Shown here one piece after another: positions 1-12,070 of a stretch of DNA of 64,000 bases (position 1 is the stretch's first letter; each line of letters begins with the position of its first letter). A program made the position numbers and the translations under genes. The notes under the pieces were generated by a model that ran no database searches, was not told the DNA's origin, and worked only from the letters and a program-made list of their open reading frames with translations. Source of the stretch: Lepidodermella squamata (lineage: Eukaryota; Animalia; Gastrotricha); contig JBLDXI010000055.1 of the NCBI GenBank assembly GCA_047495785.1, forward strand, positions 558,001-622,000. Reading direction: 5' to 3'.

Positions 1-2546
1 GGTATCGAGACAAAGCCAACTCCTTTATCTCGTGAAATGACGCAGTTCGTGGCTATCATCTCAAGTAAAGGCTGATGCAAATAGAAATTGATATAAAGCT
101 AAACAGATTTGTTCATGGACAGTTGTTTCCGTCATTCTTGGAGTGCTTGTTCTTGTGATCATCCTGCCGATTGGCATTAACTGGCTTGTCGGAATCGTTT
201 TCATCATCGCTTTGTTCGTCGGAAATGTGCCTGAAGGTGCTATTATCGAGGTTACTGTATGTCTTACTCTTGCCGCGAAGCGAATGGTTAGTTGTCAAAA
301 CGAACAATTTTCATTTGCAATCGCTTCTAAATTGTCTGAATCTAGGCTAAACGAAACGCGCTCGTGAAAAATTTAGAAGCCGTAGAGACGCTTGGTTCCA
401 CTAGCACGATTTGTTCGGATAAAACAGGGACATTAACTCAAAATCGAATGACAGGTGAGAATTTAGCGTAAAAAACCCGACAGTCTTTATAATCGACCTA
501 ATATAAAATAGTGTCTCATCTATGGTTCAATGATCGAATTTACGATGCCGATATTTCGGAAAAACAAATAGTCAGCAATTACGACAAAACTTCGGACGCC
601 TGGCTTGCTCTTCATCGCATTATGGCTTTGTGCAATCGAGCTGTCTTCAAACCAGGGCAGAGCGATATAAATCCTATGGAACGCGAGTGTATCGGCGACG
701 GCTCAGAATGCGCTTTGTTGAAATTCGGCGAGCAGTCCTTTGCCGGCAAGTCGACTGTTGATGAATTCCAAAAGTTGTGGCCTAAACAAGTTGAAATTCC
801 ATTCAACTCAACAACGAAAATGCAAGTCTCCGTCCACAAGGTGCCTCAAGGGTTTCCAAGCGTTGGAATGTTCCATTTGGTGATGAAAGGCGCTCCTGAA
901 CGCATCATCGACTACTGCTCTACGGCTTTGACAGCGAATGGGGAGATTGAGATAGACGACAATTTCCGGGCCAAGTTCAACAAAGCCTATGAAGATATGG
1001 GTGGTATGGGTGAACGCGTTCTCGGATTCTGCGACTTTAGCTTACCAGCTCACGTCTACCCGCCTAGTTACAGATTCGCAGCTGAGCCAGAGCCTAATTT
1101 CCCTGTTACCGGCCTACGTTTTATTGGTTTAGTGTCTTTGATTGATCCACCGAGACCAGCTGTCCCTGATGCAGTTAGGCGTTGTCGCAAAGCTGGAATT
1201 CGAGTTATAATGGTAACTGGAGACCATCCCATCACAGCTAGAGCTATCGCTAAGGCCGTAAACATTCTCTCCCCGGCTTCAAAAACTGTCGAAGATTTGG
1301 CGAAGGAGAGAGGCGTTCCGGTTGATCAAATTGACAAAAAGGAGGCTAAGGCTGCTGTTGTTAGCGGTGGGCAACTTCGAGACATGAACTCGCAGCAGCT
1401 GGATGAAATTATCATGACTCATCCTGAGATTGTTTTCGCGAGAACATCGCCTCAACAGAAGCTTTTGATAGTCGAAGGTTTCCAGCGATGCGGTGCAATT
1501 GTCGCTGTAACTGGCGATGGTGTTAACGACTCGCCAGCGTTGAAACGAGCTGATATTGGCATTGCTATGGGCATCACAGGGTCGGATGTCTCGAAACAAG
1601 CAGCTGACATGGTGCTGATGGACGACAACTTTGCGACCATTGTCTTCGCAGTCGAAGAAGGCCGGTTGCTTTTCGATAATTTGAAGAAAACTGTATGCTA
1701 CATTTTGGCGTCGAGTGTCACCTGCGACGTGCCTCCATTGATTTATATCCTCTTCGGATTACCGTTGCCCTTGGGCACAATTCCTATGCTTATCATTCCG
1801 CTTGGCACTGACTTCGTTCCCGCTATCACGTTCGCCTACGAGAACAAAGAGGCTGATCTTATGCTGAGGAAGCCCCGCGATCCTAACGTAATTTTCCCAT
1901 CAAATTTGAATTGCTGAGCATGTTTTTGTGATTTTTAGAAAGATAAGCTTGTCGGGCCCGCGATGATGTCAGTTTCGTACGGCCAGAACGGTATTATTCT
2001 AGCTGCTGGAGGCATCTTCGCTTACATCATCATGATGGCGGAGTACGGCTGGCTACCCGAGCGGTTGTGGAATATCCGTGACCCATGGGAGGCACAGGGT
2101 ATCAACAACCTAGAGGACGCGTATGGGCAAGAGTGGACGTTTGATCAGAGGCTGAAATGCCAATATCACGGCTATTCAACCTGCTTCGTAGGTGTCGTAG
2201 TTATGCAGGCAAGTCATACATTTTCGCAACAACAATTTTTACGCCGAATCTTTCTTTTTAGTGGGGAGGTTTGATCGTGAACAAAACCCGTCGTATGTCA
2301 TTGTTCGACCAGGGCTGGCGCAATCATTGGCAAAACATGGCGTTGGTGTTTGAAACTGCGGTGGCTGTTTTGGTGTGTTACTGCCCCGGGTTGAATGATT
2401 TGATCAGCATGTTGGAAGTTGTCGGCTTGCATTGGCTGTGTGCTTGTCCATTTCTCTTCTTCCTCTTCGTCTACGATCAGCTTCGAAAGTTGTGGATCCG
2501 CAAGAGTCAGCCAGGTTCTTTTTGCCATCGAGAACTCTTCCTGTAA
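1..2546 (+). CDS. Na+/K+-ATPase alpha-like P2C ATPase, paralog 1 (5' part outside window; non-canonical ion-binding site)
   Basis: Exons <1-64, 123-286, 346-454, 512-1887, 1939-2208, 2262-2546 join in frame. Motifs NVPEG (TM4), [14 protein letters not shown] (phospho-Asp), [50 protein letters not shown]. Intron 2209-2261 has a GC donor. Confidence 0.95.
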
Positions 2547-2970
2547 ACTCGCGGTGCCTAAATATTGACTACTTATAGTTTTGCAATTTTTTATTATGCT
2601 TCCGATGATTATGCATCCGATGAGTTTACTTCTAAGAATTTTCTGATTTGCAGCACTCTAGCTCAGAGAACCTCAGAGATCGTTTTGTGAGGATAAGGCA
2701 TACCTATAGGTGTATCTGAGCTGAAGGGCTACTTCTCATGACAATTTTAGTTATTTTCTATATAAATTTTTCTTCGCTCAACATTATTTATTTCTGCTTT
2801 TTTCCGGTCGTTTCAACTGCATTTGTTGGCGAAAACGCGGTGAATATTTCCGAATTCCCGATTCCTGATGAGACTGAAGAGACTTCTCAATACCATTTAT
2901 TTCTCATGGGCCAGTTGATACTATAGAAGAGTAATTACAGTGAGCAAGTTTTGAAGAAATAAACTTGAAG

Positions 2971-11300: not shown

Positions 11301-12070
11301 TGCTGATTATTCCACTGGGCACTGACTTCTTCCCAGCTATTGTTTTTGCTTATGAAAATAAGGAAGCTGACATTATGCTGAGGAAACCTCGTGATCCGAA
11401 GGTTCGTGCTTCAATCTCTTCTCATTTGAACTGATAATATGAGTTTGCTATGCTATAGAAAGACAAACTTGTTGGAGCAGCGATGATGTCGGTTTCTTAT
11501 GGGCAGAATGGGATTTTACTATCAGTTGGAGGCATTTTCGCGTACATGATCATGATGGCTGAATACGGCTGGCTTCCAGACCGCCTATGGATGATTCGTG
11601 ACTCTTGGGAAGCTTCAGGCAACAACAATCTAGTTGATTCTTACGGTCAGGAATGGACTTTTGACCAGCGGATGAAGTGCCAGTACCATGGCTATTCGAC
11701 ATGCTTCATCGGGATCGTCGTTATGCAGGTAAGAATCTCCTCCCCAAGGGGATAAGATTGACTGATATCCTTTTTACTTTTTTAGTGGTGTGGTCTTGTC
11801 GTGAATAAAACTCGCCGCATGTCCATTTTCGATCACGGCTGGCGAAATCACTACCAAACGTTCGCGCTTACTTTCGAAACATGTCTTGCCGTTCTTGTTG
11901 TTTACTGCCCTGGTCTGAACGATTTGATCAGCATGCTCGAGGTTGTTGGGCTGCATTGGCTGTGCGCCTGCCCGTTCGCGCTATTTCTCTTTGTCTACGA
12001 TTACCTGAGAAAGTATGCCATTCGAAATTCGAAGCCGGGATCTTTCTGGCATCGCGAACTGTACCTGTAA
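8317..12070 (+). CDS. Na+/K+-ATPase alpha-like P2C ATPase, paralog 2 (complete; non-canonical ion-binding site)
   Basis: Seven exons separated by short GT-AG introns. [85 protein letters not shown]. Highly similar to paralog 1 over the shared region. Confidence 0.96.

Follow-up and report, generated by a model that had tools for sequence, protein, structure and literature searches.

A 64,000-nucleotide stretch of the genome of the gastrotrich Lepidodermella squamata (contig JBLDXI010000055.1, positions 558,001 to 622,000; the whole stretch is called the window below) carries two paralogous genes for relatives of the Na+/K+-ATPase (Na,K-ATPase) alpha subunit, in which the catalytic motifs are kept and the cation-binding pocket is rebuilt. 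Motifs, best similarity and tree position alike assign the pair to the alpha subunits of P-type ATPase subfamily P2C, and the sequences indicate that the pair derives from the animal Na,K-ATPase alpha lineage, was anciently duplicated and has been selectively maintained. We interpret the two proteins as active, beta-dependent P2C pumps that may have lost ion sites I and III and may carry fewer or different ions, a reading to which we give a probability of about one half.

A first-pass annotation of the window had reported two Na+/K+-ATPase-like genes, and our gene models, assembled from open reading frames (ORFs) plus GT-AG splice sites (one GC-AG), agree with it, as do alignments to PDB chains. 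The models are as follows:

1–2546, + strand: paralog 1, Na,K-ATPase alpha-like and partial, comprising the last 755 codons and the stop, its 5' part lying beyond the window start
1–64, 123–286, 346–454, 512–1887, 1939–2208 and 2262–2546, + strand: exons of paralog 1, from the open frame and splice sites
8317–12070, + strand: paralog 2, a complete coding sequence of 1136 amino acids (aa) in 7 exons, from ORFs, splice sites and PDB alignments
8317–9051, 9112–9448, 9503–9637, 9697–9860, 9917–11401, 11459–11728 and 11786–12070, + strand: exons of paralog 2

In a phmmer search against PDB chains the best match was Na,K-ATPase alpha-1, with an E-value of 3.5e-186 over 495 residues and no gap across membrane helices M5-M6; calcium pumps were far weaker in the same search (1e-60 to 1e-69). 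The Pfam domains found in the pump genes are Cation_ATPase_N, Cation_ATPase, Hydrolase and Cation_ATPase_C. The motifs of catalysis and beta assembly lie at these positions:

9349–9360 (paralog 2), + strand: TGES, the dephosphorylation motif of the A domain
9989–10003 (paralog 2) and 418–432 (paralog 1), + strand: DKTGT, the phosphorylation motif
11027–11044 (paralog 2) and 1513–1530 (paralog 1), + strand: GDGVND, the hinge motif
11495–11506 (paralog 2) and 1975–1986 (paralog 1), + strand: SYGQ, the beta-subunit assembly motif of the M7-M8 outer loop

The translations thus contain DKTGT, GDGVND and SYGQ in both copies and TGES in paralog 2, as had been claimed; TGES was checked in paralog 2 alone, since the window start cuts paralog 1. 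SVSYGQ and MKGAPER also occur in both. At the level of sequence, the machinery of ATP-driven catalysis (domains A, N and P) and the outer-loop SYGQ are intact. Canonical alphas (pig alpha-1, PDB 3WGU and 3B8E; human, 7E1Z) are ~60% identical to the pair over the P/N domains and M5-M6, and share with it the ten-helix layout, DKTGT, TGES, GDGVND, SYGQ, E327, Y771, S775, T807, D808, Q923 and E954. In contrast to them, the window proteins carry N776S, P778T, E779C, I780D, D804P, D926G, T774A, E953F and Y1016L, with M3, M5, M7 and M8 heavily changed and, in paralog 2, an N-terminal extension of 148 aa.

Pig numbering follows from phmmer alignments with solved chains of Na,K-ATPase alpha-1; these are gap-free, also between the NLKK and PLPLG anchors and through M6, which makes the numbering unambiguous. 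The altered segments are:

9795–9833 (paralog 2), + strand: M4, with A323G, L329A, L330I, A331I and T332E, E327 being kept; the same peptide at 221–259 in paralog 1
11213–11251 (paralog 2), + strand: M5, with T772I, T774A, N776S, I777V, P778T, E779C, I780D and F783P, Y771 and S775 being kept
11303–11326 (paralog 2), + strand: M6, LIIPLGTD, with C802I and D804P, T807 and D808 being kept; identical at 1789–1812 in paralog 1
11726–11797 (paralog 2), + strand: M8, QWCGL, split by the last intron, with A925C and D926G, Q923 being kept
2206–2273 (paralog 1), + strand: M8, QWGGL, with A925G and D926G, Q923 being kept
12053–12067 (paralog 2), + strand: C-terminus RELYL (Y1016L), with RELFL at 2529–2543 in paralog 1; canonical KETYY

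The M5 peptide of paralog 1 (1699–1737) is identical to that of paralog 2, and in M9 E953F stands beside a conserved E954. These alignments confirm the residues listed by the first-pass annotation, both the changes (T774A, N776S, E779C, the new D780, D804P, D926G and the RELFL/RELYL ends) and the retained set (E327, Y771, S775, D808, Q923 and E954). The extra Glu that it had noticed in TM4 is T332E, and the TM5 Lys of H+/K+-type pumps is indeed absent, S775 being kept. P778T, F783P, A323G, T772I, C802I and E953F go beyond that list; P778T removes the conserved proline of M5, and F783P introduces another.

In the sodium pump, site I is formed by T772(O), S775, N776 and D804, and site II by M4 carbonyls, E327, E779 and D804; the SERCA equivalents of the pump site residues are N768, E771, N796, D800, E908 and E309. 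Site III comprises Y771, T774(O), Q923 and D926, with E954 and the C-terminal tyrosines needed, and E327, E779, D804, D808, D926 and E954 have established roles in sites I-III (e.g. PMC5026471). In both window proteins the canonical site I/II ligands N776, E779 and D804 are replaced, with E327, S775 and D808 kept, and site III shows D926G, T774A and Y1016L, with Y771, Q923 and E954 kept. Both copies have lost three carboxylates of sites I-III (E779, D804 and D926), N776 and the last tyrosine, a pattern that supports the earlier view of them as unlikely 3Na+/2K+ pumps. In SERCA terms, the equivalents of N768, E771, N796 and E908 are lost and those of E309, T799 and D800 retained. No new Lys or Arg is found at canonical-invariant membrane-helix positions of the window proteins.

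The losses bear directly on the possibility that the pair are ordinary Na+/K+ exchangers in which D780, E332 and backbone carbonyls compensate for the missing ligands. E327, D808, Y771, S775, Q923 and E954 are kept and the new acidic residues adjoin the lost ones, as such compensation would have it; however, all 68 canonical animal alphas in the comparison have both D804 and E779, Na+/K+ binding is known to depend on D804, D926 and the C-terminal tyrosines, and the helix-breaking P778 of M5 is lost as well, and we consider ordinary exchange very improbable.

Six coordinating or lining positions now hold smaller residues (A323G, T774A, N776S, E779C, D926G and L329A), with a volume loss of ~160 cubic angstroms by standard residue volumes. 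This shrinkage could be read as a pocket enlarged for another substrate, be it a cation that is larger or softer, such as NH4+, an organic cation or polyamine, or a thiophilic metal, the more so as acidic residues are kept or added (E327, D808, E954, and the new D780 and E332) and Cys occurs at 779 and, in paralog 2, at 925. We see this as unlikely, if still a serious alternative, since Cys925 is Gly in paralog 1, the proteins resemble neither P1B pumps in their CPC-type metal motifs nor P5B pumps in their M4 motifs, and water or helix repacking may fill the space left by the smaller side chains.

To place these changes among canonical proteins, we compared 68 full-length animal alphas with a canonical pocket, whose alignment has 482 columns of at least 97% invariance. 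Paralog 2 departs from the invariant residue in 111 of these, and the changes are concentrated in the membrane: 61 of 147 invariant sites (41%) are altered in the membrane helices versus 42 of 304 (14%) in the N-terminal, A and P/N regions (Fisher p 2e-10). The canonical consensus is matched with an identity of 0.61 across the A and P/N domains, 0.36 in M5 and 0.41 in M3, M7 and M8. The paralogs themselves align without gaps over 755 residues, with 83% identity in protein, 74% in DNA and 46% at third codon positions, and the parts best conserved between them are M4, M5 and M6 (0.88-0.90). Nei-Gojobori counts give a saturated pS of 0.753 and a pN of 0.108, from which it follows that the duplication is old and that strong purifying selection acts on both copies. 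At 71 of the 83 invariant positions altered in both copies the new residue is the same. The earlier claim that selection acts on the shared changes is upheld by these figures. Judged by the enrichment in the membrane, the conservation of M4-M6 and the shared new residues, the membrane domain underwent its rebuilding before the duplication and has stayed fixed since, as expected of a working, different site and not of a relaxed one.

The same pattern bears on whether the pair could be non-transporting, ATP-dependent regulators, scaffolds or receptors, as was proposed for the pump-independent roles of CATP-1 and EAT-6 in C. elegans. One half of the side chains that ligand ions have disappeared, and pump-independent roles of P2C alphas have been reported in literature cited in PMC11631496. 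Nevertheless, purifying selection is strong on the catalytic motifs and across the entire core of A, N and P domains, the greatest conservation between the paralogs falls on M4-M6, a pattern more in keeping with a functioning site than with a relaxed one, and the suppressor role of CATP-1 itself needs D409 (PMC11631496). A purely regulatory function strikes us as distinctly unlikely.

Two public sequencing runs, here X1 and X2, contain the locus, and their contigs were aligned to 8000–12300 (4301 nucleotides (nt)). X1, from 2015, is RNA-like, its nature being guessed, and X2 behaves like DNA. X1 contigs join 9051/9112, 9637/9697, 9860/9917, 11401/11459 and 11728/11786, that is, five of the six introns of paralog 2 are spliced out, and X2 has no splice joints, as expected for DNA. 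Because X1 contigs skip introns and X2 contigs do not, paralog 2 is transcribed and spliced as modelled, with X1 taken as RNA by guess; the sixth intron (9449–9502) is supported by alignment to canonical pumps alone. In both runs paralog 2 also occurs in a second form, a few percent divergent, with 39 of 40 listed differences at third codon positions; this is further evidence of constraint. The second form resembles a divergent allele or homeologue of the kind known from asexual or hybrid genomes. That the genes are pseudogenes in decay, or artefacts of assembly, was considered as well and rejected as next to impossible: both frames are open across every exon, pN is far below pS, X1 is spliced, and the locus is present in two independent runs.

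In trees the pair forms one long stem inside the animal-alpha clade, of 0.58 changes per site in a 125-row FastTree tree and 1.12 in a 40-row IQ-TREE tree (LG+C20). The clade holding the pair and the animal alphas has support of 99 and 98, and the branching position within it is not settled by the trees. The first-pass annotation had left the degree of novelty to a P2C phylogeny that includes nematode CATP proteins; the part now in hand is the placement inside the animal alpha clade, on a long branch, in a tree that has no nematode CATP sequences.

The M5/M6 signature of the window proteins was not found in the word index, the cluster representatives or the JGI metagenome contigs searched. A word index of 5.8 billion proteins was searched at two length classes: among proteins of up to 866 aa the 495-aa catalytic exon had matches of at best 62%, all of them ordinary alphas, and a 129-aa M5-M6 fragment, aimed at short transcript fragments, found nothing above 72% identity and SSVTC, CDVPP and IIPLGT in none. 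Among the best 150 of 1.84 billion representatives of 50%-identity clusters, the top identity was 60% and none had Pro804. For both collections ‘not found’ is weaker than ‘absent’: the 50% clusters may merge close kin with canonical pumps, and the length filter excludes full-length kin. Back-translated M5/M6 peptides met two canonical loci alone in the JGI metagenome contigs, both matched via NKEADIML. A search from a mite protein with an altered pocket (P0126) recovered its own clade and no relatives of the window proteins, and nematode proteins numbered 0 of 30 looked-up representatives.

Pockets without D804 are not rare among proteins annotated as Na,K-ATPase alpha. A clade of acariform mites lacks D804 and has YILAGNVTTIYPF and LIA/C/SLGTD, with SYGQ lost and D926 kept; a millipede alpha-like paralog has D804C and D926N, a springtail paralog D804V, and a bdelloid rotifer alpha-like protein has Lys776 and is without D926. 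Many environmental fragments are also without the canonical D804. The rewired paralogs in public databases (P0278-P0289, P0323, P0145 and P0178) are all annotated simply as Na,K-ATPase alpha. The mite clade (Blomia, Dermatophagoides, Euroglyphus, Oppia and Medioppia) shares with the window proteins G323, I772, A774, V777, T778 and non-acidic residues at 779 and 804, but it is only 49% identical overall to the window protein, below canonical alphas, retains N776 and D926, and no longer has SYGQ or the KETYY tail. An approximately unbiased (AU) test did not reject a common clade of the mite alpha-likes and the window pair (p 0.49), although the best tree does not place them as sisters, and long-branch attraction is a possible cause of the likeness. 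We found no study of the mite alpha-like clade, whose proteins carry no annotation beyond Na,K-ATPase alpha.

Lineage-specific extra P2C alphas of uncertain ion specificity are likewise known as CATP-1 to CATP-4 in C. elegans and CG3701/JYalpha in Drosophila, and divergent invertebrate P2C alphas have been described repeatedly (Okamura et al. 2002, J Membr Biol 191:13; PMC9609216; PMC11631496; PMC13100137). CATP-3 is required when K+ is scarce (CATP literature: PMC9609216, PMC11631496, PMC13100137). The C. elegans proteins Ce2C3-5, which we take to be CATP paralogs although PMC9609216 does not state the mapping, are without SYGQ and group outside the main invertebrate clade (PMC9609216). Unlike these, the window proteins keep SYGQ and fall inside the main clade, which places them, indirectly, outside the SYGQ-less nematode group, a comparison made by published description and not by sequence. 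On the sequences at hand, the pair represents divergent P2C alpha paralogs whose combination of residues is unique among the sequences searched, on a theme that is recurrent and little studied.

How might such a pump work? We envision that the E1P/E2P cycle and the pairing with a beta subunit would be retained, and that 3Na+/2K+ exchange would be impossible, as far as sequence can tell. Site I would be dismantled by the loss of N776, E779 and D804, and site III by the loss of D926, its C-terminal support being presumably weakened because the last tyrosine is gone. What would remain is a site-II-like pocket of M4 carbonyls, E327, D808 and T807, perhaps helped by D780 and S775/S776. Because sites I and III would be lost and only this pocket left, fewer ions would move in each cycle, most probably a single cation outward in exchange for a single counter-ion or proton. 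A reduced ion count of this kind would resemble that of the single-site PMCA/SPCA pumps and of Artemia alpha2KK.

PMCA/SPCA are without site I because the carboxylates of M5 and M8 are lost, and their site II consists of the M4 Glu and the M6 Asp. The same logic is proposed here, with a single site II left after M5/M8 carboxylate loss, a parallel drawn from established knowledge; nonetheless these pumps are of another subfamily, lack a beta subunit and retain the M6 Asn where the window proteins have Pro. Artemia alpha2KK (PDB 8K1L) is, like the window proteins, a natural sodium-pump paralog with an altered ion pocket and intact catalysis, and the M7 exon has its best PDB match in this protein. 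It is a working pump with a lower stoichiometry, 2Na+/1K+ (PMC10756188). The two cases differ in that alpha2KK adds two lysines and keeps all carboxylates, whereas the window proteins lose three carboxylates and add no lysine; an Asn-to-Lys change of the alpha2KK type is not met in them, N324 being kept and N776 being Ser. The H+/K+-ATPase alpha, gastric and non-gastric (PDB 5YLU and 7X21), is likewise a P2C, beta-dependent pump with a reduced ion count, and matches the catalytic exon almost as closely as Na,K-ATPase does, with E-values of ~1e-180 to 1e-183. It has, however, an M5 Lys at the S775 position and keeps the M5/M6 acidic residues, where the window proteins have S775, Cys779 and Pro804.

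Several points weigh against a beta-dependent pump working from a single remaining site. D804 (SERCA N796) contributes to site II too, so that this site is also damaged, and the placement of D780, E332 and C779 relative to the cavity is guesswork from sequence positions. Pro804 occurs in none of the relatives whose M6 was read (150 representatives, 120 short fragments and the named relatives), and the expression evidence covers paralog 2 alone, from run X1 with its guessed RNA nature.

The sodium-pump ion pocket is among the most conserved and best-studied of sites, with liganding positions identical in 68 of 68 canonical alphas compared. A catalytic engine and SYGQ that are kept, with three pocket carboxylates replaced and the replacement fixed through an old duplication, amount to a natural experiment like alpha2KK, one that bears on how ion number and selectivity are set. 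The D804-less alpha-like paralogs of mites, a millipede, a springtail and environmental eukaryotes make the question wider than one genome. More speculatively, and with considerable doubt on our side, the pair and perhaps the mite clade might represent an unrecognised beta-dependent P2C class, evolved repeatedly by removal of D804 and its neighbours, with a substrate other than 3:2 exchange; candidate substrates would be a single cation exchanged for H+, NH4+ or an organic cation, or a soft metal. If true, a new transport specificity would be added to the best-studied family of ion pumps.

The two genes also differ in structure. Their introns are 51-60 nt long with GT-AG ends, the sole exception being the last intron of paralog 1 (2209–2261), which is GC-AG with the donor GCAAGT; the intron at the same position in paralog 2 is GT-AG. 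The intron at 455–511, after ...TQNRMT, occurs in paralog 1 only and is absent from paralog 2, and was therefore gained or lost since the duplication. The coding sequence of paralog 2 begins with its extension:

8317–8760, + strand: N-terminal extension of paralog 2, ~148 aa, Ser/His-rich with RRGS and RRTS motifs, preceding Cation_ATPase_N

Pfam Cation_ATPase_N covers residues 149-217 of exon 1 of paralog 2, and the extension is a candidate for a regulatory role.

Between the two pump paralogs lie a degenerin/ENaC-type channel gene (Pfam ASC; 3224–5100, - strand) and a gene with TPR and RRM domains. The position of a sodium channel between two relatives of the sodium pump could be accidental, or the genes could be used together in one epithelium. 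The TPR-then-RRM gene occurs twice in the window, at 5895–7783 (+ strand) and 25094–26632 (+ strand); the copies are only 29-45% identical, and their duplication is therefore old. Directly downstream of paralog 2 is an intron-less cytochrome P450 gene of 565 aa (12365–14062, - strand), whose exact product is without a record in the public gene collection. Farther along, G+C content is 52-60% at 38000–44000 versus ~40-46% elsewhere in the window; the long ORFs of this region are 37897–39885, without a Pfam match, and 41085–43211, with a C-terminal CAP-Gly domain. Two adjoining PAS-domain ORFs at 54261–56817 (- strand) are probably exons of one bHLH-PAS-type gene.

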